Assembly: GCA_964035545.1 (NCBI GenBank)
Contig: OZ037770.1
Span: 4,682,662 to 4,746,661, forward strand
From: Bugula neritina
Taxonomy: Eukaryota > Animalia > Bryozoa
Length of the DNA stretch: 64,000 nucleotides
Reading direction: 5' to 3'
The notes under the pieces were generated by a model. The model was given only the letters and a program-made list of their open reading frames with translations, had not been told where the DNA came from and made no database searches. This document shows positions 4,663 to 53,000 of the stretch, one piece after another. Position 1 is the stretch's first letter. Each line of letters begins with the position of its first letter. The position numbers and the translations under genes are program-made.

Positions 4663-7600
4663 ATGGCAACAGCTGGTGAGTGAATTTTAATACTATTTTA
4701 TTCACTTATTTCTTGGAAAGCAGAAATATTCAAACTCTGAAGATATGTTGATATTATGCGACCAGAATTTAATATAATATATCTATAAGACTATTTTATT
4801 ATTACTACTGTCTATAGTACTGTTTTATGTCACCAATTAGTGTATTACTTTGAAAGTAGTAGAATAGATAAAATTATGCAAGCTGTTGGGTTAGAGTTGT
4901 CTTATCTCAACACAGTAAACACTGAACTACAAACCATACATTAAATGATTATTTAGAAAGAATAATTATAAATCTATCTAATAAAATATTTGTTACTTTA
5001 GTCATTATTCTGATTACTGAAATCCACCATATAAGAAATATATTCAATCAGTAGATGATAGGTGTCAGAATGATAGACACTACCTGCTAGCACTGTGTAA
5101 TAATCACTGCACTGTCACTGTATTATGTTACAGAGAATATGATAATCTGGTTCAGACATTCTGGACAGCCTCCTGTAAGCTGGTCAGATGTAAGGAGAGC
5201 TGATACCAAGTTATATACTACTGCTGAGGTGAAACATGAAGTTGGGAGTTATTACATCACAGATCTCAAGCTGGAGAGAACAATTCCAAGTAACATTGGA
5301 GAAATTGCGGGTAAAGCCCTGTGTCTACATGTTTCTAACCTGACTGACAGAGCAAGTCTAGACAAGTGAGTGTCTATTAAAATAGCTGTGTAAATGTTAA
5401 ACAAGTTCATTTATTAAATAATGATAATACTGCTATTTATGATGATGGATAAAATATAATGGATAATATAATATAAAATATACCTGATTGAATACACCAC
5501 TATAGTATACAGAGTACATACTACTTTTTGTGTTATTTATTAAATAATAATGGATAATAGACACTGAAGCTGAAGCATATTTTTGCTCATAATATATTCA
5601 TACAGTATAATATAAATCAACATAGTAATATGTGCAACATTGTATGTAATCCAAATGAGCTTATAAAACTGCCTCTACTGCTACTTCATAATATATGCTG
5701 AATCTAAGCATGCTTTTGCTCATAATATATGCATACAACATAATATACATCAACATAGTAATATGTGCAACAATGTATGTAATTCAACTAAGCTTATAGT
5801 TGTATAGAAACTAGGAAGTGCAAAACTGCCTCTACTCGATATCACTGACTAAATCATGTTTTATGTATATATAGCTAAAAATATGAGTAATGCACAGTCT
5901 ATAATATATTATACAAAAGACTATGTTATGCCCGCAACTGCAACTGCAAATGTTATTCAATATATTAATTTACAGAGCATTGTAGAGTGAGGCCTTGTGT
6001 ACTATAAACTGACAGCTAAGCTTGCTAAATGAAGCTTCCTCTTCCTACCTACAACATAATATTATAAGTGAAACTTTTTGTGTTTTTGTGTTACCAATAA
6101 GTGCGTTTCTTGCATATTTTACTTAGTTAAATACACAAGTAGCATGATATAATAGTATATATTATTTTGATATGGTAGACATAAATACATGACACACTTT
6201 ATATTACAGTCTATGTAAGCTGACTCAGTTAGAGAAACTAGACATAGGATGGAATCATCTCGACACAGTACCAGAAGTTGTGTCATCACTCACTTCACTT
6301 AAAGAGTTGAATATGGAAAACTGTAAATTATCTACTCTACCTGAGAGGTTTGTGGAACGCAGTCTTTCTTGTTTCAAACACTCAATAATTCACATGTTGA
6401 TATTATGCTTACCAAGTATTGGGAATTAGTATGTCACTATGTATTGTTGAAAAGCATAAAGCTGTAAATCACATATTCCTTGAGGCTATATGATATTAGA
6501 GTTTCTCAAAACTTAAAAATAAATATGTTTCAGTTATCTGGCATTACATTTCCTACTGCTATAAAACCTTCTTTAACAATTACTATAGCACCCACTTGTA
6601 GTTTACTAAAATCTAGTTCATGTTAAATGCTTTTTAGCTTTTGCTATTTTACTTTGAATTTGCCTTGTTGCAATAAATTTATTTCTTGGATATTTTACCT
6701 GATTGAATACACAAGTATAGAATACACAGTATATAATAATATCCTGATACAGTGGAATATATATATTATGCAGTTTATATTACAGTCTATGTCAGCTGAC
6801 TCGGTTAGAAAAACTACACATGAGAGATAATCCTCTCAACACAGTACCAGAAGTTGTGTCATCACTGACATCACTTAAAGAGTTGAATATGTGGAACTGT
6901 GGTTTATCTACTCTACCTCAGAGGTTTGTGTGTCAAAATAGTTATTTGTTTTGTATTAAACATTCTATATTTCACTTCTTTAATGCTTCTCAAGTAGTGT
7001 TATGCTATGATATCATAAATTGCCAACGTATGTTGAAAAACATAAACATGTATTCTTTTAACTTATCTAGTTGTTTGTCCTAACGTGGAAATAATACAAT
7101 TTTATAGTGAGCCATTGTATATCCTTATATCACAGAACTTTTTGTGATCAAAAATAAAGCAGCCCTCTCCAGTTTACTGACAATCATGGTAATAATCGAA
7201 TCTTTCTTAGCTTCTTGCGTCAAGCACTTTGACTATCCATTACCGGAATGAATTTTTTTTCTGCATTTTTTACTTGGCTGACTGTGCTTAGCAATATAAT
7301 ATGTACAGTGTATATTATTATGACACAGGAGACTACATACATCATACCCTTTATAATTATTGCAGTCTATGCCAGCTGACTCAGTTAGAGAAACTAAACT
7401 TAGGAGGAAATCCTCTCAACACAGTACCAGAAGTTGTGTCATCACTCACATCACTTAAGGAGTTGGATATAAAGAGCTGTGAATTATCTACTCTACCTGA
7501 GAGGTTTGTGGAACACAGTCTTTCTTGTTTCAAACATTCAATAATTCACATGTTGATATAATGCTTACCAAGTATTGCTAATTAGTATGTCACTATGTAT

Positions 7601-10600
7601 AGTTGAAAAGCATAAAGCTATAAATTACAATTTTCTTGAGGCTATATTGTATTTGAGTTTCTCAAAACTTGAAAATAAATATGTTTCAGTTTTCTGGCAT
7701 TACATTTCCTATTGCCATAAAAAGTTCTTCAACAAATACTATAGCACCGCTTGTACTTTACTAGAATCTATTTCAGATTAAATGTCTTTTACTTTAAATA
7801 TGCCTTGTCAAAATAAATTTTTTTTGCATGTTATACCATATTGAATACACCACTGTAGTATACACAGTACATAATATTATCCTGATACAGTGGATTGCAT
7901 ATATTATGCACTTTATATTACAGTCTGTGTCAGCTGACTAAGTTAGAGAAACTAAACATAAAATTGAATCCTCTCAACACAGTACCAGAAGTTGTGTCAT
8001 CACTCACCTCACTTAAAGAGTTGAAGATGTGGAACTGTGGTTTATCTACTCTACCTCAGAGGTTTGTGTGTCAAAATAGTTATTTGTTTTGTATTAAACA
8101 TTCTATATTTCACTTCTTTATTGCTTCTCAAGTAGTGTTATGCTATGATATCATAAATTGCCAACGTATGTTGAAAAACATAAACATGTATTCTTTTAAC
8201 TTATCTAATAGTTTGTCCTAACGTGGAAATAATACAATTTTATAGTGAGCCATTGTATATCCTTATATCACAATACTTTTTGTAATCAAAAATAAAGCAG
8301 CCCTCTCCAGTTTACTGACAATCATGGTAATAATCGAATCTTTCTTAGCTTCTTGCGTCAAGCACTTTGACTATCCATTACCGGAATGAATTTCTTTTCT
8401 GCATTTTTTACCTGGTTGACTGTGCTTAGCAATATAATATGTACAGTGTATATTATTATGACACAGTAGACTACATATATCATACACTTTATAATTATTT
8501 ATTGCAGTCTATGCCAGCTGACTCAGTTAGAGAAACTATACATAGGAGGAAATCCTCTCAACACAGTACCAGAACTTGTGTCATCACTCACCTCACTTAG
8601 GGTGTTGAATATGGAGAGATGTAACTTATCTACTCTACCTGAGAGGTTTGTGTGCCACAATAAGTTTTATATATCACTTTTAACATTCAATAATTGTTAT
8701 TTTGAAGCAGAATTTCAACACAGTAAATACTACATTAAGATGTTTATACTTTTTCTCTGCAAACCTACATATGAATCTCACCGTTGCTGGGGATATTGTC
8801 AATTAGCACACTATCTAGAAGTTTCCTCTGCTTCACAAGTTCTTTCATAGTATTTCTATATCTTTTTGAATATCTCCCATGATAGGTTGACTGGGCTGTT
8901 TTTCAGAAATCGTTTTAATAACTATTTTTATTATATTATAGTTATAGCTACTTCTGTACACATAATTTGCATATATATTATATTATTATAGTAACACAGT
9001 TTCTTTTTACTGTCTAATTGAATGCACAAGTGCTATATACAGTATCTACATAATATTATCCTGATACAGTGAATTACATATATTATGCACTTTATGTTAC
9101 AGTCTATGTAAGCTGACTCAGTTAGAGAAACTAGACATAAGTGGAAATCCTCTCTACACAGTACCAGAAGTTGTGTCATCACTCACATCACTTAAGGAGT
9201 TAAATATGGAAAACTGTAAAATATCTACTCTACCTGAGAGGTTTGTGAAACAGTCCTTCTTGTTTCAAACACTCAATAATTCACATGTTTTTATAATGCT
9301 TACCAAGTATTGTTAATTAGTTTGACAATATGTAGTGTTGAAAAGCATAAAGCTATAAATTACAATTTTCTTGAGGCTATATGATATTAGAGTTTCTGAA
9401 CACTTGAAAATAAATATGTTTCAGTTATTAGGCATTACATTTCCTATTGCTCTATAACCTTCTTTAGATAATACTATAGCACCCACTTGTGGTTTACTAG
9501 AATCTATTCCCCATTACATGCTTATTAGCTTTCGGTAGTTTACTTTGAATTTGCTTTGTTGCAATAAATTTGTTTCTTGATTATTTTTCCTGATTGAATA
9601 CACAAGTATGGTATAATATACAGTATATAATAACATCCTGATACAGTGGATTACATATATTATGCACTTTATATTACAGTCTATGTCAGCTGACTGAGTT
9701 AGAGAGACTATACATAGGATCGAATCCTCTCAAAACAGTACCAGAAGTTGTGTCATCACTCACTTCACTTGAAGAGTTGGATGTGGGGAGATGTGAATTA
9801 TCTAATCTACCTGAGAGGTTTGTGTGTCACTACAAATTGTACATCATTTTTAACGTTCAATAATTATTATTTTGTAGCAGAATTTCAGCACAGTAAATAC
9901 TACATTAAGATGTTTATACTTTTTCTCTGCAAACCTCCATATGAATCTCACCTTTACAGAGGATATTGTCAATTAGCACACTATCTAGAAGATTCCCGAT
10001 GTCACAAATAAGTTTATAGTATTCCAATATCTTTTTTGAAATGCTTCCCATGAGAGGTTGACTAGGCTTTTCTTAAGAAATTGTTTTATCAAACCTTTTC
10101 ATTATATTATAATGATTGTTACTTTTGTACCCATAATTGGTATATATTGTAGTAATTTTAGTAATTACTAGTTTTGTGGGCTTCTAGCGAGCAATATCTT
10201 TATATTATCTTCCAATAACATCACGGCTTGTAACAGGAATGAATGATTTATTAATACGCAGTAAAAGTATTAGCCAAACGATACATCCAGTATCAAGGGT
10301 AAAAATATACATCTATCTTACACTAACTAGCTATCACACTCTGAGTATGGCTGCTATCTACATCCGGCGCCCTCCGCGCATCGCTGGGGGTCTCATGTGA
10401 CGGATATCGGATTGGCTGGGGAGCACGTGGGATAACATACTACACTCCCCACTACACTGCCCCCCACCACAGCAGGAAGCCCACCTTCCTGATAATGCCA
10501 AAATAAAAAAATAAAATAACAACAAAAAAACAATAAGATATCTGCATCACCAGATCAAAATTTATACTTAGGCCAACGGTTTATTAAAAAAAAACATCTG

Positions 10601-13600
10601 GTTAAAATATAAAAATTAGGCACTATAAAACTAAGAGATTGTATCTGTACCAAGAGCTTTTTGTACGGCACCGAGAGATATGATGTGTAGAGAGACGGCA
10701 AGTGAGGCACCACCTGCGGCGTAGATCAGGAGGACAGCTGGAAAGAGTTAGGGACAGGGAAATAGAGAGGGGAAGGAGAACGTCATCTACGACACTGGGG
10801 TTGTCACAAAGATGGGTGTCGGGGCAATGTGGAAGGTAGACACTCAGTCTTTATCATCTCTCTTGAGCTGGGCCACAGAGTCCCGGAGAGCCTTGAGTTC
10901 AGAAGCGGCGGCTGATATCCTAGAAGCCAACCTCTCTCTCTCTAGTTCATGCATCCGTTGCTCCATCTCTCTTAGATTTCTAGCAACAGAGGAGTGGCGT
11001 TTGGGGATGAAGACTGCCATCGCCACTTACGAGAGGGTCGAGGGGAGACGGGTGAGGATGGGCATCATCTCTGGGGGACTTCTATCCGTTGTAAGACTAC
11101 TCGGGGTACGATGTTGGGACGGGGCGCAGTGTGAGCGGGGGTTTGGGGCGAGGTACCAGGAGCTTCTTGAGCCCAGGGGGTTTGGGGCAGGGTCCCTGGG
11201 TAATGGCACGGGGAGCGGGAAATTCTTGGCTCAGCCGTTCGTAACGAGCAGAGTCTGAGATGAATGGCTTGATGAGGCCGAGAAAAGTTATGAAGGAAAG
11301 CTTGTCCACATTGTAGAGATGTCCAACGTGACACTCCATAGTCCTCTGGTGACGGAGGGTGTAGTCCCTGTGGTAGCTGTACTCCCCACAGGGGCAGAAG
11401 GTGGTGATGAAATGTTGATGGATGTGTACTCGGAGGCGGCGAGGTGTGGTGAAATGCTGTTGACACAGCCGGCAGGTGGTGCAGTCGTCGTTTCCTCTAT
11501 CTTGTTGAATTATGTTCTCGATATCCTGGGTAACCCAGCTAGACCGGGTTATGAGTATCTCCGGTAGTGTAGCGGAAGTAGGTTCCGTCTCCCAAGCCAT
11601 CTCCAATGGTGGCATATCATCGTAGTTAGAAGAGCGAGTGATATCTGAAAGAGCAGAATTTTTGTTAGATCGAATTTGATCTTTACAGCATAATTCTGAT
11701 GACAATCGACTGTTACTAGTCTGAGAGTCATGCATCTTTTTGTACGGCACTTGAGAGACTGTGTTTAGACGTGTAGACTGACTGAGAAACATAGTGTCAA
11801 GCTCCAGATCTAGTAGATCGTCGGCCATTGTTATGTCCTCGTTTAGCCCAGTCTCCAGTAATTGTGATTCAACCGGAGTGATTAAATCAGAGTTAACTGA
11901 TGTCAGACCCGTTTCCATAGATAGGAATATTAGGACTAGGCAGGCTTACTTTGGAACTTGGTATTTGGAATCATACTCAACGTTCAAGTTTGGATTTTAG
12001 TGGTTTTAGTATGTGTACCTTTGGTGATGTCAGCGTAAGAAAAGACTGGACAGCGTGTTTATTTTGCATGGCTAGAACTGTTTGCCCCGGGCGCAATAAT
12101 TCCACCTAATACTCCGCCCTCGCAAAAGTTGATATTTTCGCGGTGTTCACAACTTCCTTCGTTTCGCTACCAGTCTCTCAGTACCGCACCCAGCTTGGCC
12201 TTCATGTCTGCCGCTTGTAACGCAGTCGCATACGAAGTCTCAAATATACTAGGGGTTGCCTAGTACGTTGTCCACTTTCTAAGGGAAATGGTGTGCTAGT
12301 TGGGGGAGATGGTGTAGTCACTGCTGGTGGGGGTGTACTCACTGGTGGACTTTTATGTTCCGCCGGGGGCGTTTTCGGCCTGCTATTGACTGTTGTATCA
12401 TTTTCAAGATTTCCGGATACAGCCCTCCCCCGGGGGGGTTTTGCACTTCCGGAGCTAAAACAGGTTCCGGAAGTGTTGGCGTTAGACTTGGCGCTGAGGG
12501 TGGTGGGCGCACTTCTGGTAACGGAAGTGGTCTTTCCTGCCTCACCAAGTCTTCTGCCCGCGGCATGACCACTTCATACTCTGGTTCATGTCGTCGCCGC
12601 TAGCGCGTTGCTGTCTGCCTCCTGGGCTCTAACAACCGGGGGGGAGGGGGGGTTCTCCAGCCGCACCTGGGCTAGCCCAATACAGCTTCAAGGGAGCCTC
12701 ATTCTGGATAGACACCTGTCCTGAGCGCTCAAGCTTGTAGGTGTGATTGGGCATCACTTCAACTACCGCGTAGGGTCCCACGAACTTAGGCTGTAGCTTA
12801 GCCGCCTGTCCTTGATGCCTACGGTAGTTGACCATCCACACCCAGTCTCTAACTTTGTAGAGGGGTGGTTCCTCGGAGTCTTCTTTTCGCACCTGCCACT
12901 GCTTTTCCCGTAGTATTGTGTGTGCGACCTTCATTTGCTTTACCAATTTGCTGACATACTCGTGGATGGGGTAGTCCTGCTCAGGAATGTGGTAGGTGAG
13001 GTCATCTGGCACCCTAGTCTTTCGAACGAGCATCAGGAGGTTAGGGGTCTCACCAGTACTGGTGTGCGGTGTGCTACGATAGGCCCGCATGACTTGCGGC
13101 AACACCGTATCCCATTTCTTCTGACTCCGGTCGAGGAGAACACTGCGGAGTGCATCGCCCAGCATCCGGTTGTTGCGCTCCACCACTCCGTTTTCCTGGG
13201 GGTAGTATGGAGTGGTCCTGCTTTAATTTACTCCTCAGAGGCAGCAAAGATCGCTCATCAGCTGAGACTAAAATTGAGCCCCCTGGTCCAAATGTATATG
13301 CTCAGGCAAGCCAAAATAGCAGAATACATGTTGGTCCAGCACCCTGGCCATTGTTGGAGCGGACGCATCTGGGATAGCCAGCGCGTCTGCCTACCTAGTG
13401 AAGTGGTCGGTTAATACTAGGATCCAACTGTTTCCTCTGGGGGTTAGGGGCATGGGTCCGACCAGGTTGACAGCCACCACTTGCCGCGGCCTTCCAGCAT
13501 ATAGCCTCCGCCGTCCCGTTTCACCAAGGAGACGACCATGCTTGCTGGCCTGGCAGATTTCGCACTGTCTTACTCTGATTCGTACATCACGCTCCATGCT

Positions 13601-16600
13601 AGGCCAGTACCACCGGAGTTGTAATTTGGTATGCACCCTCTGGACTCCTGCGTGAGCCTGTTTGTGGGTGTTCCATACTAACTCCCGGCGGATAGCAGCT
13701 GGGCAGACTACCCTCTTCTTCTCGGGGTGTCTGTTGCTTGCGGCCAATGTCATGGTCAGCAGAAAATCCGGCCCGATCCGCAGGGAGTCCCAACGTCGAC
13801 AATACAGCCGTAATTCGGCGCATCTCTGCCTCAGCTTTTCTTCATTGGGTCGTCGCCCCTCCTTCTTGGCTTGGTACACGTCGGCTACCACTCCCAGAGG
13901 GTTTTCCTGGAGTTTTCGTAGCTCCCTAACATTACTGGCCAAGACAGGGTTGTCGCGGAGGTTTTGTACTACCTTCGGAGGCGTACCCGCCTTCTGTTGG
14001 AGTTGACCCTGGTCCCAGTCATACTCTATCCCAGGGTGGTCCAGTGCCGTCAACTAGGACCGCAGGAAACTTCCATCCCTCTTCTCAATGTTGAGACACT
14101 GCCTTCACCCTTCGTCTGGTCGCCGGCTCAGTCCGTCTGCATTGCCGTGCTTCTTACCGGGTCGATGTTTGATCCGGTAAAATAACTCGGCCAGGACCTT
14201 GAGCCATCTCGCGACCTGGCTAGACAGTTCTGCTCTCTTGCACAACCAAATCACAGAGGTGTGGTCCGTACGCAGCCGGAACTTCCGGCCGTATAGATAA
14301 GGTCTAAAGGTCTTCACTGACTTGATTACTGCCAGCAGTTTCTTGCGGGTAGTGCAGAAGTGCCGTTCAGTGGGTGAGAGAGACTTGCTGTAATAGGCTA
14401 CTACTACTTCACTACGTTCCTGCACTTGCGACAGCACAGCGCCAACATTCTGGTCACTGGCGTCCGTGTCTAGGATATACACCAGAGTAAAGTTTGGGTA
14501 GGCCAAGATAGGAGCCTCCAGCAGACGGCCCTTGAGGCAGACGAACGCCCTCTGTTTGACGGAAGTCCACTTCCAGGTCACCCCCTTTGCGGTGAGCCGA
14601 ATTAACGGCTGTGCCACCCCTGCAAAGTCTGGTATGTATTGCCTGTAATACCCTACCAGCCCCAGGAAAGCCTGATGTCCGGTCAAATCATGGGGGTAAC
14701 CCAGTTTTCCACAGCTCGTACTTTTTCAGGATCAGTCGCCACGTAATGACGGCCGACGATGTGCCCGAGGTACCTCACCTCCGGCTGCAAGAGAGCGCAC
14801 TTGGAAGGTTTGAGCTTCAGATTGGCACCTCTGAGTCGTTCAAACACCTCCCGCAGACGACTGACGTGTGTCTGGAAGTCTGGGGAGATCACGATGACTT
14901 CATCGAGGTAGAGTAGCAGTGTCTTCCAGTGGAGCCCACTGAGGACCTGTTCCATGAGCCTCTGAAAAGTGGCAGGGGCGGAGGTCAACCCAAAGGGTAG
15001 TACTTTCCACTTCCACAGTCTGTCCCGTGTGATGAACACCGCCTTCTCCTGGGCGTCGGGACTCAGAGGGACCTGCCAATAACCGCTCAGCAAGTTTAGT
15101 GTACTAAAGTACTTGCTGCCGGCCAGGGCGTCCAGAGATTCATCAATCTCGGGTAAAGGATAGGCGTCCTGTATGGTTACGCTATTTAGTTTGCGGTAAT
15201 CCACGCAGAACCGCCAACTGCCGTCTTTCTTCTGGACCAGGACAACCGACGAGCTCCATTCACTATGTGCTGGCTCCTTCTCTTTTTCCGGCCCCAACCT
15301 CCTCATGGGTTGCCAGGTAGGGAGAGTCCCCACAGCCAACGGTATCTCATGACAGACAGCTCTAGTCAGGCCCATGTCATGGTCTCCGCTGCTGAACACT
15401 TCGTTGTACTCGCATAGCAACTTGGCCATAGCCTGTCGCTCCCCGTTGCTCGCGCAACTATCACAGGACGACTTGTACAACTCTTGGACATGTAGCGGGA
15501 CGGTCCCCCGCCCTGGAGACGGGCGTTGTTGGGGACCTTCCGTCGCATCTCCCAGCGACGGCCCTATATCCTTTTCCTGAACAGAATGGAAACGGCCCAG
15601 TACGGACCCTGATGGTAGCTGTACCGCTTCTGAGAAGGGGTTGACACACTGCATCAAGATTTCTCCTCGTTCAGTCAGCCGGTTAAGACTACTGGCGAGT
15701 TGGAATCTTGCGTGCGCGCCTTCGACAACTCCCAACCCAGAGATCTGGCTACTGTGTACTCTACAGTAAATGGTAGCCCGGGTACGGCCTGGTATTGTAC
15801 AGTTCCGTATTACCTGCACGCCTCCCACTAGGGGACGGCCAGACTTGTCGACACAAGTGAGCTCTTTGCCGGCCATCAGTATAGCTGACTTGTTAAAGTC
15901 AATGCGGCAACCATGTCGCTTCAAGAATGGCATCCCTAGTATAGCATCCTCCTCTAGTTGGCTGATGACGAAGGTTTCCTGGATGGCCCGGTCGCGGACG
16001 CGTCCAGTCAGCTCTATAATACCGTAGAATGGGATACGCGACCCGTCTGCAAGGGTGCCAGGTTCCCCGGTATAGGGAGCTAATTCTCTCCTCTCCTTAG
16101 GGGGAAGAGCGTCAAAGACCCGACGGCTGAGGAGATTCGTGGTACACCCGGAGTCTAACAGGAAAGTGACAGACCTGCCGGCCACCTTCCTGGTAAGAAA
16201 TAGCTATCTCCATGTGGTTGTACCCTTACTCCCCCAGCGTGCTCGGTCTCGGCCTGGTGGGGCAGTGCCCGTTTCGACCGCGGTTTTCGGGGCCTTTTAG
16301 GGCGAGGATTTCTCCGCGGAGGGGCGATTGGTTCCCCTCCGATGTCCGGATGGACCTTGCCAGCCGGCTCCATTTCTGGTAGCCAGCTGAAGCGGTTAGC
16401 GAGAGGCGGTGTGAATGGTTCCAGTCGCCGCTCTGGTCGACTGGTCCAATGGGGTGCCTGCCACTCGTGGGGGGTATACCGCGCTGTCCGTACGAACGCC
16501 CTGCGGTATCCACCTCGTGGTTCCTTCATTCTCGGCCTGCGGGGTTTGGAGGCGTCCGCGAGCCGTGGAAGTTTAATCGTTTCCCAGATTGTGGGCAACT

Positions 16601-19600
16601 CGAGCGGAGATTTCCTCGTGTGCTGCATCTTCAACATAAAGCAGCTGGCCTCAGAACCTCTACCCTCGGCCTCAAAGGTCCTTGGGTGGGTTCTGTGGGG
16701 TTGGCACGGGCTAGGATCGCCACCAACTGTTCTAACATGGCTATCATGCGGTCCACCTCCGCTTCAAGAGGAAGGGTGGTGGTGGCGGCAGCCACTTGGA
16801 CTGGATGGTCCGGTCCCGAAGTGATTTGTTGGGAGCTCACTTTAGCTCGATAGAATTGTTTGGCCAAGATATAGGCTTCACCTTCATGCAGTGCATCCTC
16901 TATCGTGGTCACCCCTCTTGCATGAAGCTGGTGGTGGAAACCCAAAACATTGAGGGACTGTACAAAGGCGTCATAGGTGTAATGTTCCCGGTGTGTTTCT
17001 CGCAAGTTGCTGTATGCGATCTGTGCCAGTCTCTTCACTAGGGTAGCATGATCCTGTAGTGGTGTGCGCGCTTCTTAGTGCAACCTTTGTGAACGGGCCC
17101 TGGCGTCCACAGCGGTGATGCCAAAACGGGCCCGCAGCTCAGCATAGATCCCGTTTACACTGGATCCCAGTCCGTACGACTTGGCTTACTTCGTCAGCGC
17201 TGTCCGTAGTTGAATCAGGGCTACTCGTGGTGGCTATCGAGTGATGGCCATGACTTCGTTGAATTCTCGAATAAATTGTTCAACATCTTCTAGGCCCGTA
17301 ACATACTACACTTCCCACTACAACATTATATATTTTTATAGTAACACAGTTTCTTATTATTGTCTAATTAGTAAGAAAACTACTTTCTTATATTTATAAT
17401 GACATCACATTGCAACATAATTGACTCAATCAACCGTATTGTATAAAGCTCATTAGTAAAAAATCACTTAGTAAATTATATAGTATGTTTGATTTAGGTA
17501 ATTCAAGTTCTACTTTTAATTATTTTGAAATAAAAGATCTGCTTTTATATTGTAAACCGAAGAGGACAAAAAGAATTATTATTTTTTTTCATGCTCTCCT
17601 TTGGTTATCTATCTCCGATTCTCAGTGTAATAGAAGCCAAATTTTGTCTTATTCCTGTTCTCAAACAGCCTGTTAATATATTGTTTCATAATTAATTTAC
17701 AATTCTAAATTACGAATCAACTGGCCTTTAAAGGTGCAACATGTTCCTGCAAGCCGATGACTTTCCAGAATTGTATTCTCTCATAGTGAAATAATTCACA
17801 ACTTCTATTTCCTGTCTAGAAACTGTAATACATTTATTAGGGTAATTAGTGAGAGGTTGTGGCAGAAGTATTTTATTTTACTTGAAATTACTTTAATGCT
17901 TTGCGTAGATGTTTCAGAGCTGTACTGTGTTCCTATTTGATGGTAAATTGCATGTATTATGGCACATAGAACAAAATTCCTTATAATGATAACATCCATA
18001 TAGTAGAATATCAGTGTGAACAGTTACTCAGTGATCAGAAGTGTCAGAAGTATTTTATTTTCACTTCACATTACTTTAATGCCTTATGCAGATGCCACAG
18101 AGCTGTAGCCTACCGTGTTCCTATTTGCTGATAACTGTGTTGTGGCACATACTAGGAATTTTCTACTCTGTAGTATAAAATATTATTCCTTCTGGTAGAA
18201 TACCAGTGTGAACAGTTACTCAGTTATCTGCCATATAAAAAAAGATGATAGTATTACATGTAGGTTGTTTTTTTATGACAGTACTTAGTACAAATGTAGC
18301 ACTTTTTTTACCAAATATATAGGGTTAACGGGGCACAACGGTCATAGGGGTACAAAAAGCCGGCCAAATTGTGAGAAAACTTATTGACTTAGAGTTGTGA
18401 TTTTTTTTTCATGAAACGATATTGACATAATTATTCAGCCTTTGTAGTTTCAACACTTTCGGAACATACGTGTTGAAAAGGCGAGTAAAAAACTGTTTTT
18501 ACCTACTTTTTGTAATTTTTTTAGGATGTCGTTGAAGCCTTATAACTTTTTACACTAAAAGGCAAGAAGCCTATATTTTACTAATATTGTTGCCATTGCT
18601 TGTCTCTACAATGCTTAACTAGTATAACAGCAAACACTGAAATAAATTTTCCTTGAGGCACATTTATTTTCAATTTTGGCCACACGGGGCACAATGGGCC
18701 ACGCTGACCGGGGCACAATGGGCCACCTGATTATTGCACCCTGATCACTGTTTTTAGTTTGTTTGCCCAAAAAGTTGGTTGAACTGTTACTAAAATCTAT
18801 AAATATAGCCATTTCTGACTTTTTTGTAAAATATCAAAGACATCATGGTAAGACTACAAAACTACAAGTTGAAGCTCCCCTAATACATACATCTGGTGAG
18901 GTTAAAGCTTTGCCATTTTATACATAATACAAAACACTTTGCTGTTGCTACTAGTAGATAGTCATGATAATCATTATATATTACACCATTGAGGGAATAT
19001 ACATGCATTTGACTGAAATAAGTTGTGATTTGCTCATTTGCTCCCCCCCCTCTCCCTTCTGTACTCCAGTCACAAACCTCAGCCATGGATGCACCATAGC
19101 TACAGTTCATTGAAAAAAGTTCACTCAGAATTTTGTAGTACATTTTAGTAAAGTTTTTTTTTAATAAGTGTTGTTCTGAAGTAAAAATAACAAAACATTT
19201 TTAGTTTTAAACAGTAATGATAATGGCACTGCAGAACCGAGTGACGTGCGTTTGATTTTGATTTTGCTATCCGTAGTGGCACAAACTGTACAGCTAAAAC
19301 ATGAATTTTGCTGTAGATCTGAAAGAGTATCTTTCTTTATTTGTATTATTAAATAAATAAAGATCAGATATAACAAAATACACAAAATTTCAATATATTT
19401 GTTGTGTCCCACCCAGTGGCCCATTGTACCCCGGTACCGGGGCACAATGGGCCAATTTTTTCGTCATGAAAATTTCATTATTCTGAAAGTTGTGAAAGAG
19501 ATAGAAACAACAAACTGGTACCTGTAATAGACAACAGATGTAGCATTAGGACTAGGGATTATTGAACTAGTAACTTGAAAAACAGACAAATGGGAGCAAC

Positions 19601-22600
19601 AATTGCAAAATTCGGCCCGTTGTGCCCCCGTTACCCCTACTTACAATTATACTGTTATATTATATATCTTTATAAAATACTTAAAATGTTATGAATCATA
19701 TATAATATGATACTCGTACATAATTGTAACTTAGACATACTTGTTTTCTTTCCTTAATTAATGTACTAAATCAAGGTATTGTATATAAACTTGTTATTGT
19801 AACTGCAACTTAGTACTATATTATGTGTAATTATTGTTATATTAATATTGGGTATCTTTATGAAAACTAATATATCAATTACCTGTATAGTTAAGTCTAA
19901 TAATAGAATTATTATATATTATTAGAATACAGAGATTAAAGAAGTTACAGGAACTCACAATTTCAGAGAATAACTTCACCAGTCTACCTTCTTCAGTATG
20001 TGCATTGAGTAATCTGCACACACTGGATATATCCAACAACAGATCCATGACGTCCTTGAACCCTGAGATACTACAGCTAACACATCTTGAGTCTTTCCGT
20101 ACACGTGAATGTGATGCTCTTACATCTCCTCCGCTAGAAATCTGTGTAAGTGGAGTGGATGCTGTGCGACAATACTACACAGACTTGGCTAAAGGTGCTG
20201 GTAGAAATCTTCCATTTGCTACAACAGTGGTGTTGGGGAACACCATGGCAGGTAAAACCAGTCTAATCAGAACATTACAGAGCACTGACAAGAAGAGAGT
20301 TCTGACTGACAGAAGTCCTAATGCAGAGTATGATGAGACCACAAAAGTGTTTAATGTGGAGAAGGTGGAGGTGGATGGTACAACTCTTCGTCTATTTGAT
20401 ATGGGAGGCCAAGAAGTTTACCATATCACATACCATTTAACACTGAGACAGAATTGTGTACCAGTCATTGTAGTCAACATGGAGCAGTATGATCAGATTT
20501 CGAAAATGTCTACAAACAGAGAGGCTGTGAGAAAGCTGGCTTTTGACTTCATGTCTCACCTCTATCTCGCTCATCCAACTCTTGGTCCGCCTAAGCTTGT
20601 CTTCACACACAAGGATAAGTTTCGGAGTGAAGTTTTCCACCAGCTTCGAAGAAAGTTTCTTGTAGTGTCCGAGCAGTTATGCAGAAATATTCTTGAAGAA
20701 GAGAAAAGTTTAGAAGGTGACTTTGCTCGAATTCAACATTTCACTAAATCAAATGGAAAAATCTTTGAAAATGAAAGCATCTATGAAGTTGGGAAATTTG
20801 ATGAGTACAAGATATTTGAATCGATTAGAAGATCTCTTCTTCAAAGTTGCCAACACTTTGTAAAGCCACTTCCAAAAGTCTGGGAGGATGCCAACAACAA
20901 CATTTTGTCCTTACAGACTCCACATAACACCTTTGATGAAGTATTGGCTGTGATAAACAAAAAGCAGGATAACATTGAAGCAAAGCAATTGGATACGATT
21001 ATCATGTACATGCATGATTGTGGCAAAGTTCTCTGGTATAAACATATTGATGCACTCAGGCCATACATATTTCACAAGATCACAGAAATAACCAAGCTAC
21101 TCTGTGTCTTGTATCATCATGATCCAGACATCTGGCAAAGGAGAGTTGATCAGTTCAAACCATATTGCTGCAGAGAAGGAGTGAGAATTGAAAAACAAGA
21201 TTTTGGAGAGTTTGTGAATTCCTTTAAAATAAATGGCTTGATGACGAAATCTCTTCTTGAATATTTGATCAGAAAAGAAACTTCGTTCACTGATGATAAT
21301 AATGTCGAAATTGCTGTTTGTTTGCTCAGAACATTCCGTTTATTGTATGGCCCTTTGAATAAGGATTCTGAAGATCCTTACTTTATAATCCCCCAGTTTG
21401 CCAAAGAATCCTACAGCCTCTCCTACACTCCACCAAAGGAGCTACTGCTTCATACCGACACACAGTTTAATGGTCTGGCATTACCGCTACATGTCTACCA
21501 TCAGATGACGGTTGGATTGCTAGAACTATTTGCTGACGATTCTGCCACAATACAAGTGAAAAGGAATGGAGCAAATGTATATCAAGATAAAATATACACA
21601 CAGCTGATACATGACTATGAATCCAGGAGAGTGTTGCTCTATACGTCATCTGGTGCTAATAATATTACCAAAGCGTGGGAAAAACTCATTTCAGTCAACA
21701 ACAACATCCTCAGACATGTTATGGAAATTTGGACTGCCAGTCGTCCAGTCACTGCCTGTATCTCTGCTCACTGCTTCCTGCTAGGTGTTCCATGTCCTAA
21801 AAAGTCTATTCATTCTAAATGGTGTTTTCGCTCCTTGAAGAAGCCTTCACCAGTTGTCAAGAAGTGCAGCGGATCTTCAACAATCTTGTGCAATAATGAG
21901 GAGATCCCAAGAGCTTTGATTTTCCCATGTATGTATCACTAATAGTGGTTATTACTATGTTTCTATAAATTGAAACTATTGCCTACTACATAAATAATTT
22001 TCATTACTACAAACTCTAAAAAAAACTTGCTAATTTTTTTTTAAATTTGAAAATATTTAAACCAAATACATTCTGTTCTGCGTAGATTTGTAACATTCTC
22101 GTAGTGGTTCTGCCGCAACTTATATTTTAGCTACCAAATACGTTGATTACGGTATACATAATAGGTGAGCTGGTCATAGTATATGTAGACTGGGTACATT
22201 TTACGTAATATGGAAGCTGGTTGTAGTACATGTAGACTGCACTGTTTTGTTCAGGTGAGGCATTGACTGAGACAGAAACCGATGAGCTGGTGAAGCTATT
22301 GACTCAACTTAAACTTCGTAAACAACAGAATGATGCAATCAGAATTGGTACATCTTTATAATACTCATTTTCTCAAAATCAGAGATCTACAATGTAGCAC
22401 TTTATTTACCTTGAATGGAAATTTTATAAGAAAATGCCTTTTTTCAGACAATCAATTAAAGTGCAACCTTGCAAACTTTTTCTTTTTCAATTTATCCTGG
22501 TATTAGCCAATCAAATCATGTGACTGCAGATGATGATGGTGATCTGAGTGATCTCTCTGATGATGATGACAATCTGTATCCTGATGAAGAGAATGAGGAA

Positions 22601-24971
22601 AACGTGAAGTTAATACAACCCAACCTAAAGACTACCAGAAACCTGAGGATTAAGAATCTATTCTCGAATGCTGAAAAGGTTGGTGTATCAGTTTAGGGTC
22701 ATAATTTTTGCCATTAAAGTATGCTCACTCAATTTATTAGATTTTTATGTTCATATTGTATAACGTATTCTTAGGCCAAACTTTATAAAAACATGCACCT
22801 GTAGCAAAATGACACTATTTACTGTTAGCTCTAATATTAGGCCATGTCTGCCTCAAACATGTTTAACTAGACGTACAAGTATGTTAACTATTACTATCAT
22901 TCATTACAGTGTTTAGTAATCTGTTCTAAGTATATTTTTATCCAGGTATTCAGTATGACAAGAAAGAGAGGAAGAGCTCTTATAATAAACAACAAGAACT
23001 TTGTTGAAAGACCAGACTTATGCAGGGAAGGATCAGATGCTGATGTTGAGAATATGTCTGCCATGTTGAAATCTCTCAAGTTTGATGTTGAGACACACAC
23101 AGACCTGACAGCAGAGGTATGTTGTTATGGTGGAAGTAATGCGAGCACTATTTAACCATCAAGTAGTTTTTCATATATAATGTCTTGTTTGTTCTTTAAC
23201 CAAATATTTTGTAAAGTTTGTAAAATATTTTACCAAAATATTTTTTTTTTACATTCACTGAATTATGTCTTTAATTGTACTTAAGAATTTTTCTAAAGCT
23301 ACATTGAAAATTTTGGGTCTTGTTAGTTTCTGCTCACTTTTTGGTCTTTTGTTAGGTTGATGAGAAAACTTTTTGCTCACATTGCATATAACTTTATAGC
23401 AATTATTTGACACTTTAAAATGAGGTAAATTTGTTTGACTGTTTAAATTCGTTTTCAAATTTGTAGGAAATGCTGTCTGCTGTGAAGTCTGAGGTGAAAA
23501 AGGGGAAACACAAAGAGTTTGGATGTCATATACTGGTTGTTATGACTCTTGGTAGAGAAGATAACTGTATCTATGGAACTGACCTCGAGAAGGTCAACCT
23601 CACTGACCTGTGTGATTTGCTCACTCCTTTGTATTTCGATGGAATAAGTAGAAAACCTAAGGTTGTCATACTAGAAGCCTGCAGTGGAGGTAGTTTGTAG
23701 TATAAATTTGAACTTTTAGTTCAATGGTTGAACTAGTAAATACTCCCTGTCAGAAACTAGTCATCTAATTAATTGGCGCTTCAACATGATTCATAGTTTG
23801 GATTGCTTGAGCAACTGGGTGTCTTGAGATTGTTTAGCTCACAATATTAAGGTCGTTGTTATGTATGTGTTACAGCAAACATTGAAGTAAGCCCAGACAG
23901 ATCTGGTCTTGCAGCAGATCAAGAAGAAGAAACTGAAGCTGCCTCTTCTACACCTTCTGAAGCTAATGAAGAAGACAATGATGAATATCCTGAACCGCCA
24001 AGAAAAAGAATTAGACCCATCAGACCAGTCTCACCACCAGAACCTAGAATAGAAGAGTGTAGAACTGTACGGGATATAGATGATCTTCTTGTTCTGAAGA
24101 GTAGCGTCTGCTGTAAGTATAGCAAGAGAAAGTTGTTCATTGGTTTGATAAATGTGCAGCTACAGTTTTTTTCAATCTAAAAGTCTGTTTCCTAAATTTA
24201 ATCTGACCATGCTATATGTAATCTTTTTCTTGTTCTTCGTAAATTGCGAGTTAATGTTCAAAATCAAACAGAATTTAGAAAATTTCAGGCTTGCTTTGTC
24301 TACACCATGCTTTGAGTTTCATTTAATTTTATTGCAGCATCAAAAAGACATCCTGAGTATGGATCTCCTATGATTAGAGCTCTAGTATCTTCAATCTACA
24401 AACATGCCTGTCATCGTGATCTCTACACCATCTTTCAGCAGGTGAGTTTAAAATGATAATTTTGTCAATTTCTACTTGTATATAGAATTATTTTTATGTT
24501 TAGCTGTGTGATAATTTACAATTTGCATGTCCAATGAATAAAATATAATGTAAATTAGGTAGCTTCTTAAAACGTGCTCGTATTTTTACTAATTTATATT
24601 TCTCCCACTGTGCCTGTTGTAAAGGTTAAAGCCCAACCTCAAGCTTTTCTTTAATATATTCTATAGTGGTAGCAGACAACTCTCAGGATCTACTTGCTTA
24701 GATTGAATATGAATAGGAAAGCCTAGTTTAGCAGCTGAGAGTTGTACCTTATCACAGCTATAAGTAGTTAGTTAGAACACAGTCTTACTAGTCATTACTT
24801 ACTCTACAGGTGGACACTAAACTAGTGAAGAAACTGTATACAGGTGAAGATTCAGAGAGAAGCAGAAATTTGGTTGCAATCTGGAATACTCTTCCATTCA
24901 GTAAAAGACTTTACCTTTTTCCTGGCTTCGATGGGTTTAATAGAGAGGACAACTCCTCACTCAGCACATAA
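4663..24971 (+). CDS. ROCO-caspase paralogue 1: LRR-Roc-COR-caspase-like fusion, ~1450 aa, caspase His lost
   Basis: Hand-spliced exons: 4663-4675 (GCCATGG Kozak), 5134-5365, seven 138-bp LRR exons, 19926-21928, 22255-22347, 22530-22678, 22946-23116, 23467-23689, 23876-24112, 24338-24441, 24810-24971 (TAA). All introns are GT-AG with compatible phases; total 4353 nt, open. Roc motifs GNTMAGKTSL / FDMGGQ / THKD; COR-type YMHDCGKVLWY; caspase RGRALIINN..REGSDAD, MTLG, EACSG, SKRHPEYGS, KRLYLFPG. Confidence 0.85.
6210..6347 (+). CDS. LRR cassette exon 1 of paralogue 1 (2x23-aa LRR)
   Basis: TTACAG|T...GAGAG|GTTTGT, 138 bp. LCKLTQLEKLDIGWNHLDTVPEVVSSLTSLKELNMENCKLSTLPE. Confidence 0.9.
6786..6923 (+). 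CDS. LRR cassette exon 2 of paralogue 1
   Basis: 138 bp, same splice signals. LCQLTRLEKLHMRDNPLNTVPEVVSSLTSLKELNMWNCGLSTLPQ. Confidence 0.9.
7366..7503 (+). CDS. LRR cassette exon 3 of paralogue 1
   Basis: 138 bp. LCQLTQLEKLNLGGNPLNTVPEVVSSLTSLKELDIKSCELSTLPE. Confidence 0.9.
7924..8061 (+). CDS. LRR cassette exon 4 of paralogue 1
   Basis: 138 bp. LCQLTKLEKLNIKLNPLNTVPEVVSSLTSLKELKMWNCGLSTLPQ. Confidence 0.9.
8508..8645 (+). CDS. LRR cassette exon 5 of paralogue 1
   Basis: 138 bp. LCQLTQLEKLYIGGNPLNTVPELVSSLTSLRVLNMERCNLSTLPE. Confidence 0.9.
9103..9240 (+). CDS. LRR cassette exon 6 of paralogue 1
   Basis: 138 bp. LCKLTQLEKLDISGNPLYTVPEVVSSLTSLKELNMENCKISTLPE. Confidence 0.9.
9680..9817 (+). 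CDS. LRR cassette exon 7 of paralogue 1
   Basis: 138 bp. LCQLTELERLYIGSNPLKTVPEVVSSLTSLEELDVGRCELSNLPE. Confidence 0.9.
10148..17322 (-). mobile_element. Ty3/Gypsy LTR retrotransposon (degenerate, intronic)
   Basis: Minus-strand gag remnant (16631-17290), protease LLDSGC, RT (WRFCVDYRKLN, PFGL, LYLDE), RNase H (DTDASD), integrase (zinc-binding H..H/CEIC, ERNNR, GPY), with frameshifts. 3' LTR 10148-10456 with TGTAGT..ACTACA ends and adjacent PPT GGTGGGGGGCAG. Only ~24 bp of the 5' LTR survives (17299-17322). Flanks resume the same intron type seen at ~8960-9000. Confidence 0.92.
11097..11918 (-). CDS. Extra retrotransposon ORF with C2H2-like zinc fingers
   Basis: 273-aa ORF between integrase and 3' LTR: CRLC-x12-HIHQH and CPCG..HQRTMECH, then a Pro-rich tail. 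A frameshifted coiled-coil continuation lies at 10844-11026. Confidence 0.55.
   Translation of the reverse strand: METGLTSVNSDLITPVESQLLETGLNEDITMADDLLDLELDTMFLSQSTRLNTVSQVPYKKMHDSQTSNSRLSSELCCKDQIRSNKNSALSDITRSSNYDDMPPLEMAWETEPTSATLPEILITRSSWVTQDIENIIQQDRGNDDCTTCRLCQQHFTTPRRLRVHIHQHFITTFCPCGEYSYHRDYTLRHQRTMECHVGHLYNVDKLSFITFLGLIKPFISDSARYERLSQEFPAPRAITQGPCPKPPGLKKLLVPRPKPPLTLRPVPTSYPE
18322..19637. mobile_element. Non-autonomous DNA transposon, 1.3 kb, TA-flanked
   Basis: Imperfect TIRs GGGTTAACGGGGCACAACGG and CCGTTGTGCCCCCGTTACCCC, with TA on both sides. Internal GGGCACAATGGGCC copies at ~18687, 18711 and 19441. Absent at the paralogous site (CCAAATATA|CTTATAATT, ~56800). Confidence 0.8.
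19926..21928 (+). CDS. Large exon of paralogue 1: last LRRs, Roc GTPase and COR
   Basis: Acceptor ATTAG|A at 19925/6 and donor T|GTATGT. 2003 bp, the same length as in paralogue 2. P-loop GNTMAGKT, G3 DMGGQ, G4 THKD; the pre-Roc motif LTSPPLEIC..G..AVRQY is typical of ROCO proteins. Confidence 0.92.
22946..24971 (+). CDS. Caspase-like domain exons of paralogue 1 (predicted catalytically impaired)
   Basis: p20 RGRALIINNKNF..CREGSDADV. The catalytic-His codon is CTT (Leu) at 23548-23550. EACSG at 23674-23688. p10 SKRHPEYGSPMIRAL..KHACH..KRLYLFPG resembles caspase-2/9-type C-termini. Confidence 0.85.
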
Positions 24972-47007: not shown

Positions 47008-50000
47008 ATGGCAACAGCTGGTGAGTGAATTTAAATACTATTTTATACACTTATTTCTTGGAAAGTAGAAATGTTTAAACTCTGAAGATATGTTGATAAT
47101 ATGCCACCGCAATATAATACATCTATAAAACTATTTGATTATCACTACTCTCTATAGCACTGTTTTATGTCACCAATTAGCGTATTGCTTTGAGAATAGT
47201 AGAATAGATAATATTATGCAAGCAGTTGGGTTAGAGTTGTCTTATCTCAACACAATAAACACTGAACTATAAACCATACATTAATTGATTATTTAGAAAG
47301 AATATAAAGCTATCCGATAAAATATATGTTATGTTAGTCATTTTTATGATTACTGAAATCCACCATAATATATGACAGGTGTCAGAACGACATACATCAT
47401 CGGCTAGCACTGTGTAATAATCACACTGTCACTGTATGATGTTACAGAGAAGATGAGAATTTGGTTCAGACATTCTGGACAGCCTCCTGTAGACTGGTTA
47501 GATGTACTGTGTGCTGATACCAAGTCATATACTACTGCTGAGGTAAAACGTGAAGTTGGGAGTTACGATATCACAGATCTCCAACTGGAGAGAACAATTC
47601 CAAGTAACATTGGAGAGATTGCTGGTAAAGCCCTGTGTCTACATGTTTCTAACCTGACTGACGGAGCAAGTCTAGACAAGTGAGTGTCTATTAAAATAAT
47701 AGTGCAAATGTTAAACAAGTTCATTTGTGTTATTTATTAAATGATAATTGATAATATGTGGTGCTGAAGCATGTTTTTGCTCATAATATATTCATACAAT
47801 ATAATATACATAAAAATTAGAACATGTGCAACATTGCATGTAATCCAAATGAGCTTATAGCTGCAATAGCTAGGGAGTGTAAAACTGCCTGTACTGTTAT
47901 TCGATGTCATAGACTAAATCATATTTTATGTAAATATAGCTAAAATATGAGTAATGTACAGAATATGATATATTATACAAAAGACTATCTTATGTCATCA
48001 ACTGCAAATATACAATATGAAACATTACTTAATATATTAACTTACATAGCAATTTAGACTGAGGCCTTATGTACTATAAACTCACAGCTAACTTTGCAAA
48101 ATGAAGCTTCCTCTCCTCACCTACAACATAATATAACTGAAACTCTTTGCTGTTTTTGCAACAATGTATCTGTTTTCTGCATGTTTTTTTCGGTTAAATA
48201 CACAAGTAGCATGATATAATAGCATATATTATTTTAATATGGTAGACATAAATACATGACACACTTTATATTACAGTGTGTGTCAGCTGACTCAGTTAGA
48301 GAAACTAGACATAGGATGGAATCCTCTCAACACAGTACCAGAAGTTGTGTCATCACTTACATCACTCAAAGAGCTGGTTATGTGGAGCTGTGGTTTATCT
48401 ACTCTACCTGAGAGGTTTGTGTTTCACAATATTTCTTCTGTTTCAAACATCCAATATTGCACATCTTTAATGCTTCTCAAGTAGTGGTATGCTATGTTAT
48501 CATAATATATTGCCAACATATGTTAAAAACATAAGTATAAGCATTTTTTGAACTTATCTAATAGTTTGTCCTAACTTGGAAATAATACAGTTTTATGGTA
48601 TGCCATTGTATATTCTTATATCACAATTATTTTTTTAATTATAATAATAAAAGAGCCATCTGTAGTTTACTTGCGATCATGGAAATAACTGAATGCTTCT
48701 TAGCTTCTTGTCTTATTGACTTTGACTATCCATTACCAAAATGAATCTGTATTTTGCATGTTTTACCTGGTTGAGTGCACCAAATGAATATAATCTATAC
48801 AATATATATTATTATGATACAGTAGACTATATATATCCTATTTTTTATGATTATTACAGTCTATGATAATGAATAATATATGCTGAAGCTGAAGCATATT
48901 TTTGCTCATAATATATTCATACAATATAATATACATCAACATAGTAATATGTGCAACATTGTATGTAATCTAAATGAGATTATAGTTGTAGAAACTAGAG
49001 AAGCTGCCTCTACTGTTACTTGACAGTGTTGATTAAATCATGTTTTATGTATATATAGCTAAAAACTGAAGTAGTGTACAGTTTACAATATATTATACAA
49101 AAGACTATGTTATGTCATCAACTGCAAATGTACAATCTTAAACATTAGTTAATATATTAATTTACATAGCAATTTAGAGTGAGGCCTCATGTACTATAAA
49201 CTAACAGCTAACCTTGCATAATGAAGTTTCCTCTCCTCACCTACAACATAATATAACTGAAACTCTTTGCTGTTTTTTGCAACAATATATCTGTTTCCTG
49301 CATCTTTTATGTTGAATACACAAGTAGTCCGATATAATGGTATATATTATTTTGATATATGGTAGGCATAAATACATGACACACTTTATATCATGTTACA
49401 AAACCTAAATATGCATATTTTTTGAAGTTATCTAATAGCTTGTCCTAACGTGTAAATAATACAGTTTAATGGCATGCCATTGTATATCCTTATATCACAG
49501 AACTTTTGATAATCAATAATAAAACAGCCATCTGCGGTTTACTGGCAATCATGGTAATAATCGAATCTTTCTTAGCTTCTTGCATCAATCACTTTGATTA
49601 TCCATTACCGCAATGAATTTGTTTTCTGCATTTTTTACCTGGTGGACCGTGCTTAGCAATATTATATGACGTAACATGAACCTCCCCAACTCTGACAAAA
49701 TAAGACCAGCTAAAGCCACCTTTAATTCTGAGATGAATAAAAATGATTATATGTATAGATACAACACCCGGGAAAATAAAGCATCTACATTTTGTACACC
49801 AGACCTATCTCCTGAAGAGCGTGACCGTGACTATAAACTTAGAAAACTGAGGGACGAATTAAAAGCAACTCACTCAGACAAAATGTTTCAAGTAAGAAGT
49901 TTGCCCATGACTCTGATACTATTGCTTCAGAATCTCTCTGGGACCCCAGCAAGACTAACACCACAACTGATAAAAACACAGCTGGACATTAAATATATAC

Positions 50001-53000
50001 AAGTCATACTTACCACTCTACTGCTAACTAACCTGTCCAACTCAACTATCATGGCAGAACAAAAAGAGTTTAAAGTAATATCTTGGATTTGCAATGGTAT
50101 CAGGGGTAAAATACATGAACTTTCCATGCTATTAGATCAGCAATCGCCAGATATCTTTTGCTAATGTGAAACAAAACTAGATTCATCAGTTTCTGCTAAT
50201 GAGTTAAACAGAGACTACACCCTGTACCGGCGTGATCGAACTGACGGACTAGGACGTGGAGGTGGAGTCCTTATAGGCCTATCCAATGAATGTCCCTTTG
50301 TTGTTAGTAGAATCAATGTCTCACACCCTGGGGAAATCATTGCCCTTGATTTATCAATCTGTGGATACTCTTTCACTATTGCATGCTATTACCGTAGGCC
50401 CTGTATAAAACAAGTAGAAGATATAGTAAATTGGTATTATGATCAAACCAATCCGAACATTGTTATGGTTTGGGATTTTAACCTACCTGACATTGGCTGG
50501 AATGATAGTAACAGGCCTGTACTTAAAACAACAAGAGAAACTAACTTGCATCAATTGTTCGTAGATTTTATAATTTCGAATAATCTTTCTCAGGCTATCA
50601 ATAAACCTACTCACGACAAAGGTAATACGCTTGATCTAATTGTTACAAATGTAACTACCACTAACCCCTGAGTTGAGTCATCCTGCTCTGACCATTTTAT
50701 TATCAATTTCAATGTGTTGGCGGATAATGTTATTCAAAGGACAGCATCTTTAACCAAACCAAAACCATATTGGCAGTTTGAAAAGGCAGACATAACGAAC
50801 ATCACCGTGGACTGTTACTCCCTACATTGTAAAATTACCTAAGAAATGTAGCGCTGAACAATTATGGCATAATCTCAAATCTGGAATACTTCAGGTAGCA
50901 CATTCTAATATCCCATACAAATTTAGAAAGAAAAAAAATCAGAACTCTGGATATCCCAAGAAACTGAAAGTGAGATCAGAAAAAGAAAACACCTCCACCT
51001 AGCTTGCCTTAATGATCGCACGCCGCACAACATTTTAAAACACGCTACCCAGTCCCGGTACTGCAAGAAATTGTGTAACAGGGACTATAATAATTATATA
51101 AACAAACACATATGCAATACATTAGAGCAGGGTGATTCAACACCTCTTTATCAGTTCATAGCAAATAAAAAGGGCAGCTCAAATACTGTACGCCAACTAG
51201 ACAACATCCCCCCTAACAACAATACTGCTATAGCTGAATCTTTTGCGGACTCCTTTGCTTCTGTGTTTTCTATTGATGATGGTAATATCCCTCCCTGCAT
51301 TCCACCTCAAACTATATCATCTCCTATACAATTTGATCCTCGGGGAGTCCTAACACAGCTCACCAAACTCGATCCACGAAAAGGTGCTGGCCCAGATGAG
51401 CTTTCTCCTGCACTTCTAAAATATCTTGCACATTATATATATGAGCCCCTGACAAAGGTTTTTCAGTACTTTTACGATACATCTCAGACACCACAAGACT
51501 GGAAAACAGCAAACATTGTACCGATCTTCAAGAAATGAAGTCGTACAGACCCGCTGAATTATAGGCCAATATCACTCACTTCTATCATATCCAAAATCTT
51601 CGAGCATATCGTATCACATAATATCAACTGTTTCCTCAAATCAAATGACCTGTTTTACCCACACCAACATGGTTTCAGGACAAATCATGGCTGCGATACT
51701 CAGTTGTTGAATACCGTGAGTGAATTTATAGATTTTTTCAACGAAATGATAGCGGTTGCCCTCGCTGTCTTAGATTTTTCAAAGGCCTTTGACGCTGTGC
51801 CGCACCAAAAACTACAGATAAACTGCTAAATATCGGAATAGCTGATAAAACTGTCAAATGGATTTTTTCATGGCTTCAGAGGCGTCTTCTTTCAGTCTGT
51901 GTCAACAACGTCAAATTGGCCACTAGACATGTGACCTCAGGAGTGCGCCAAGGCAGTGTTTTAGGACCATTGTTATTTAATGTGTACATAAATGACATGC
52001 ACTCTGCGGTAGCCAACAGCAAGCTTAAACTATATGCGGATGATTCCTTGTTGTACAAACCAATCACAACACCTGCTGATTCTAGTTTATTTCAGAATGA
52101 CTTAGACCATCTTATAACTTGGGCAGACAGTTCTCAGATGAAGTTCAATATAAATAATTGCGAGCATATGACAATTCAACGCTCCACTGCAAATCCTCTA
52201 GTGTCTCAATACAGCATGAATAATGACCCCTTACAATGTGTTGACAAAGTATTATACCTTGGTGTCACGATTGATAATAAACTGTCATTCGATCAACATA
52301 TAATAAACATTTGCTCAAAAGCTAATAAATTATTACACATGCTGATGCGCTGTCTAAAAAAGGCTAAAAGTAAAACCAGAGCCATAGCTTATGAAACAGT
52401 CTGTTGCCCTATACTAGAATCTGCGACCCACACCTGGTCTCTATTTAAATTGAAAAACATCAACATCATAGAAGGTATAAATAGAAAAGCCTTCAGGTGG
52501 AAATTCTGTAAGAGAAAACGAGATCATATAACTGAGCTCATCACAAACTCTAATTGGGATAGCCTTGCACTAAGACGTGACAATGCAGACCAAAAAATGT
52601 ACTTTTGTATGCTTTCTGGTAGTGCCGCTATAGACCAGGGCCGGTTCTCCCTTCATTTTGCAGAGTCTCACAATACTAGACATGGTGCTATTAAGGGCAA
52701 TATCCTTACCAAAACTGCCAAACATTCATATAAACATCGCATCCATAAACTTTTCTAATGATTCTAGCTGCTTTGCCTAACTGATTATAAGCACTTAACA
52801 CCGACTCTGCTTCGTAACATCTGAAGCAGTGCTGTGTATATTTATTTATTTATTTACTTTTTTTTTCTCTCCTGGCAGTAGCTAGCTATTGAGCTTTGAA
52901 TCAAAGCATAATTAACTATATTCTTATCTCGTAGACAAAATGGTTTTCTTCCCTGCTACTGATAATCTAAACAATTGTTCATACACCACTGCATCTCGAT

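Follow-up and report, generated by a model that had tools for sequence, protein, structure and literature searches.

A young His-to-Leu change in one copy of a tandem LRR-Roc-COR-caspase family of Bugula neritina

The window analysed here, a 64,000-nucleotide stretch of Bugula neritina contig OZ037770.1, contains two LRR-Roc-COR-caspase genes, the first of which (copy 1) has a Leu codon in place of the catalytic His. The change is single, young and private to copy 1, and lies on a terminal branch of the family. Copy 1 is probably a young loss-of-function allele, unfixed or haplotype-specific, in a birth-and-death family. A sequence-only reading had proposed that copy 1 and the second gene (copy 2) form a cFLIP-like or sensor/executor pair; that proposal does not hold, as the cluster has about 27 members and nothing singles out copy 2. 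The alternatives offered with it, that copy 1 is an early-stage pseudogene or that the allele is rare, have the better support, given that the change is a singleton and young and that the contigs of all four public sequencing runs read His instead. The features discussed are listed in Table 1.

Table 1. Positions in the window of the features of copies 1 and 2.
Feature	Position	Strand	Details
Copy 1 gene, LRR-Roc-COR-caspase	4663..24971	+	16 coding exons, 1419 aa
Copy 1, seven LRR exons	6210..9817	+	138 nt, phase 2
Copy 1, exon with LRR end, Roc and COR	19926..21928	+	2003 nt; Pfam, motifs
Copy 1, caspase exon A	22946..23116	+	Arg179-equivalent; Peptidase_C14 E 9.4e-11
Copy 1, caspase exon B	23467..23689	+	Both catalytic-dyad positions; Pfam, alignment to solved caspases
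Copy 1, CTT (Leu) for catalytic His CAT	23548..23550	+	Single-base change at 23549, seen in copy 1 only
Copy 1, EACSG motif	23672..23686	+	Glu ancestral in family, Cys intact
Copy 1, exon C	23876..24112	+	Acidic intersubunit linker, start of small subunit
Copy 1, exon D	24338-24441	+	Arg341-equivalent, small subunit
Copy 1, exon E	24810-24971	+	Small subunit
Copy 2 gene	47008..63137	+	13 coding exons, 1269 aa, open frame
Copy 2, caspase exon B	61697..61910	+	His CAT 61778-61780, QACSG

In the exon model the frame of copy 1 is open, with GT-AG borders at every intron and no internal stops, and the caspase-exon junctions are those joined in RNA-like contigs of family members from public runs. 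The frame, splice sites and GTPase motifs had been described beforehand as intact, which they are; the length given, about 1450 codons, is replaced by the 1419 residues of the model. The earlier counts of seven LRR cassettes in copy 1 and four in copy 2 were verified as exons of 138 nt each. When exons were searched one by one against Pfam and the PDB, rather than as a joined spliced protein, Peptidase_C14 matched exons A and B of copy 1, and the top PDB matches were caspases. The p10 motifs were found by alignment, exons D or E alone giving no Pfam match. Copy 1 has both the p20 and p10 homology of a Peptidase C14A fold, which is complete and keeps its linker and both S1 arginines. It also shows the Roco order of Roc followed by COR; Roc is above the Pfam cut-off (E 5.5e-08), and COR-A is below it (E 4.5e-05; 23.8 bits, cut-off 35.3). 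The P-loop, switch I Thr, DxxG and THKD motifs of Roc are intact in both copies.

A micro-exon missing between exons C and D was considered and rejected, as the end of a contig from the RNA-like run X10 splices C straight to D. Exon 2 of copy 1 (5134-5365) encodes a conserved 77-residue N-terminal segment that has no Pfam match. Intron 9 (about 10200-17300) holds a broken Ty3/gypsy-type retroelement on the minus strand, with protease, RT, RNase H and integrase pieces in separate frames; a search for flanking LTRs found no direct repeat of at least 40 bases.

Copy 2 follows copy 1 on the same strand, head-to-tail, after a gap of about 22 kb. One of its introns has a GC donor (exon D, 62646-62647), and a GC donor at exon D is also present in three unrelated paralogues, L011, L024 and L026. 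Its intron 3 (about 49670-52760) contains a broken LINE on the plus strand, with endonuclease and RT in pieces. Between the two genes lie two tandem repeat arrays with spurious long ORFs (35794-37498, unit of about 28 bases; 45118-45633, unit of about 18 bases) and a pair of inverted repeats of about 760 bases that are 79% identical (38493-39255 and 41004-41762), possibly the ends of a DNA transposon.

The motifs first reported for the catalytic exon, MTLG and EACSG in copy 1 and MTHG and QACSG in copy 2, read as claimed at their positions. The Leu of MTLG aligns with the catalytic His of solved caspases, and the Glu of EACSG with the Gln of QACxG. Of the dyad of an active caspase, copy 1 thus has Leu for His and retains Cys. 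The Cys of a caspase cannot be activated without the His, and catalysis is very probably lost in copy 1; any protein made from it would, on this chemistry, be a dead protease.

The catalytic His and the S1 Gln had both been taken as changed, a claim that stands for the His and falls for the Gln. GAA (Glu) is found in 27 of the 30 nearest copies, both outgroups (EVCSG) included, while CAA (Gln) is confined among these 30 to copy 2 and the two copies closest to it. Across the whole genome, Glu occupies the position in 29 of the 34 motif matches that bear the Cys, on several contigs. This polarity rules out the Glu of copy 1 as a second lesion: because Glu is the ancestral and majority state of the family, copy 1 has one catalytic-site lesion, not two, and the canonical Gln of the small copy 2 clade is derived. 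The caspase S1 pocket is formed by Gln283, Arg179 and Arg341, and Gln283 is replaced by Asp in meta- and paracaspases (PMC2064784). Copy 1 keeps the equivalents of both arginines and has Glu at the Gln position, as do most paralogues. The Glu carried family-wide beside both arginines makes the S1 pocket unusual. Since both arginines are kept, specificity for Asp is the likelier guess for the Glu-bearing caspases.

In the genome of 216 Mb the catalytic exon of copy 2 has 132 matches, of which about 27 form a cluster at 3.5-6.3 Mb of the same contig; the 30 nearest were read and the other 102 assessed by motif matches only. A Roc-COR exon lies within 7 kb in 19 of the 20 copies with enough upstream DNA (18 whole, one partial). 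Trees of Roc-COR and of the caspase disagree, so the family copies are mosaics. Copy 1 is itself a mosaic, 89% like its upstream neighbour L020 and its sibling L023 near exon A; from exon B onwards its likeness to L023 is 99%. The caspase-exon frames are free of indels in 26 of 28 close copies. Among the lesions found, L004 has a 2-base insertion in an AG run of exon A (possibly an assembly slip) and L010 a 5-base insertion in the Roc-COR exon; L013 may be incomplete, exons D and E not being found within 2.7 kb. JGI-sample contigs of related proteins yielded only other paralogues (L052 with His and EACSE; L053 and L054 with EVCSG), and a metagenome pattern scan for the catalytic exon, in a collection from which records of this genome may be absent, gave no match. 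Neither Roco-caspase fusions nor expansions of bryozoan caspases turned up in the literature searches, and we found no paper describing LRR-Roc-COR-caspase fusions in animals.

Loss of the His is restricted to copy 1 among the 30 nearest copies, and the proposed survey for recurrent His loss therefore returned no further case in this set. In a genome-wide motif census His was matched 78 times (4 times in the control) and Leu twice, once in copy 1 and once at a place that no caspase match covers. The sibling L023, 285 kb downstream, keeps the His and differs from copy 1 at 15 positions in about 1750 bases of exons B-E; L020 keeps it too. In total, 61 private amino-acid changes have accumulated in the caspase exons of 18 Cys-intact copies, among which 0.47 dyad hits are expected at random (probability of at least one, 38%), so a single hit needs no special explanation.

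Base 23549 is A in every covering contig of the four public runs. Runs X5, X2 and X10 have no contig of the copy 1 sub-clade at this site (all have G at 23554). Run X1 has an exact match to a 124-base stretch of intron from copy 1, at which the nearest paralogues compared differ at 15 or more places, and its contigs of copy 1/L023 type (A at 23554, depth about 159) encode His. X1 shares only 0.47 of the words, differs at many sites and is probably another colony. The suggested check for CTT in other individuals thus came out negative in the contigs of four runs, with the copy 1 sub-clade covered in X1 only; neither a Leu-codon transcript nor a second individual with Leu was seen in these Logan contigs, which drop rare variants. 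The Leu codon is either haplotype-specific or an assembly error.

Private changes in copy 1 comprise 11 synonymous and 17 non-synonymous (p 0.07 against neutrality), compared with 138 and 227 in live copies (Fisher p 1.0), changes before and after the lesion not being separable in this count. The non-synonymous share of the private changes of copy 1 is no higher than in live copies and gives no sign of decay. In the course of events that we favour, one A>T substitution recently struck the catalytic His codon of copy 1, an ordinary gene of this large, mosaic tandem family; with about 17 neighbours that retain both catalytic residues, the loss would be tolerated. The allele would most likely be headed for loss or for overwriting by gene conversion, and probably has no selected role. 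The recency of the lesion, and not a demonstrated decoy role, would account for the intact state of the rest of copy 1; an open frame is expected either way, under decay or under a selected role. The His>Leu copy itself is then minor, an expected product of turnover in a large immune-like family. A point against simple turnover is that 7 of 10 long-exon-B copies on the contig are conserved Cys>Ser pseudo-caspases; this sub-type tolerates, and may favour, loss of activity.

The catalytic Cys is replaced by Ser in nine of the 30 nearest copies; seven of these read AGC (L019, L021, L022, L024-L027) and two TCC (L010, L011), so that with CAT>CTT in copy 1 there are three independent dyad losses in the set (CAT>CTT, one copy; TGC>AGC, seven; TGC>TCC, two). 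The seven AGC copies (pS 0.20) are under purifying selection like live copies, with omega of about 0.3: dN/dS of the caspase core is 0.28 (0.31 in live copies), omega in the lesion exon is 0.27 (0.28-0.37 in live copies), and group-private alleles alone give 0.32 (p 0.002 against neutrality). These are counting estimates made without a recombination model, and part of the divergence may be older than the lesion. The Roc-COR exons of L019 and L021 are open and fall in different clades. The Cys>Ser copies are stronger decoy candidates than copy 1; the idea of a dead regulator fits this set, not copies 1 and 2. The conserved group offers a real test case for the repeated evolution of pseudo-caspases outside vertebrates.

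Whether copy 1 could itself be a recent, independent recruit to such a role was weighed against this background. If expressed, it would dampen or tune many live paralogues, not copy 2 specifically, through putative COR and caspase small-subunit oligomers, acting as a scaffold or broad damper in the manner of the Cys>Ser copies. The three independent dyad losses, the omega of 0.27-0.32 in the lesion exon of the AGC group and the intact fold, linker and pair of S1 arginines of copy 1 are consistent with recruitment, but about half a dyad hit is expected by chance (0.47), selection cannot yet be read from so young a lesion, and the Leu codon has neither a transcript nor a second individual in the contigs of four runs. 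We regard recruitment as unlikely. A broader version, about as doubtful, is a network in which selection maintains about one-third of the closest copies as dead proteases, of at least three independent origins, with shuffled LRR and Roc-COR halves, restraining or signalling via active paralogues, copy 1 being the newest recruit.

It is less likely still that the assembly consensus is wrong to give T at 23549, a site in a multi-copy region, copy 1 being in truth normal and active. In favour of this, T appears in no contig of the four runs, and three other bases private to copy 1 (23032, 23782 and 24488) are likewise absent from X1. Against it, the scarcity of indels in the caspase exons of close copies (26 of 28 free of them) suggests an accurate consensus, the site lies outside any homopolymer, and X1, with its many differences, probably derives from a different colony.

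That copies 1 and 2 form a dedicated pair, cFLIP-like or sensor/executor, joined as a heterodimer via Roc-COR, is very improbable. The two are adjacent, share one architecture, combine a dead with a live caspase and differ in LRR number, and CFLAR shares a chromosomal region with CASP8 and CASP10 (PMC7586951). However, the live upstream neighbour L020 is far closer to copy 1 in sequence. The Roc-COR of copy 1 is 79.7% identical to that of copy 2, as against 86-89% to five other copies, and eight other copies equal or beat copy 2 as its match; the caspase identity of 77% is among the lowest. These identities rule out copy 2 as the closest partner. Adjacency of dead and live copies was also rejected as a pairing signal, a live neighbour being found for 0.78 of dead copies along the cluster against 0.89 by chance. 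Both genes keep full LRR arrays, so that there is no division into sensor and executor. A window with two genes can suggest a pair that the wider family does not support.

Comparison with known systems leads the same way. Like cFLIP-L beside caspase-8, copy 1 is a full-length caspase-fold paralogue that would lack catalysis near active paralogues. In cFLIP-L (CFLAR), both dyad residues are replaced (His>Arg and Cys>Tyr), the replacements are conserved across vertebrates, and the protein is recruited by DEDs to a proven partner (PMC7586951). Copy 1, in contrast, has one recent His>Leu change with Cys kept, LRR-Roc-COR instead of tandem DEDs and a putative partner; its lesion is a terminal singleton, absent from a sibling 99% alike and, on the limited evidence of four runs, unseen elsewhere. 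Expanded bivalve caspase families likewise include copies lacking His or Cys, with a putative function, and are a lineage-specific expansion, but carry CARD, DED, DD or short prodomains with LRR unmentioned (PMC7836458), whereas the Bugula copies are fused to LRR-Roc-COR.

Roco proteins such as MFHAS1-like proteins, LRRK2 and bacterial CtRoco share the LRR-Roc-COR core with intact GTPase motifs and differ in lacking the C-terminal caspase of copy 1. The sole named full match is a Watersipora subatra MFHAS1 homologue (32%), which has no caspase match. CtRoco is a dimer with GDP and a monomer with GTP (PMC5714945), and a stable Roc-COR heterodimer therefore cannot be assumed.

Paired plant NLRs (sensor and executor, for example RRS1/RPS4) are typically head-to-head, co-inherited and functionally split. 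The Bugula genes resemble them as neighbouring LRR-bearing immune-like paralogues and differ in being head-to-tail members of a 27-copy mosaic array, with no fixed two-gene unit around copies 1 and 2.

It is hardly credible that the whole Glu-bearing subfamily is weakly or not proteolytic, its caspase fold a scaffold and live versus dead no real contrast. Glu at Gln283, Ser after the Cys, a short segment preceding the Arg341-equivalent and the recurrent dyad losses might suggest it, but the His is kept in 29 and the Cys in 21 of the 30 close copies, across several contigs, together with both S1 arginines.

Elsewhere on the contig, in a minus-strand block at 3.52-4.16 Mb, dead long-exon-B copies nearly alternate with short-exon-B copies, an arrangement suggestive of the duplication of a unit of two genes; this block would be a better place than the window to test pairing.
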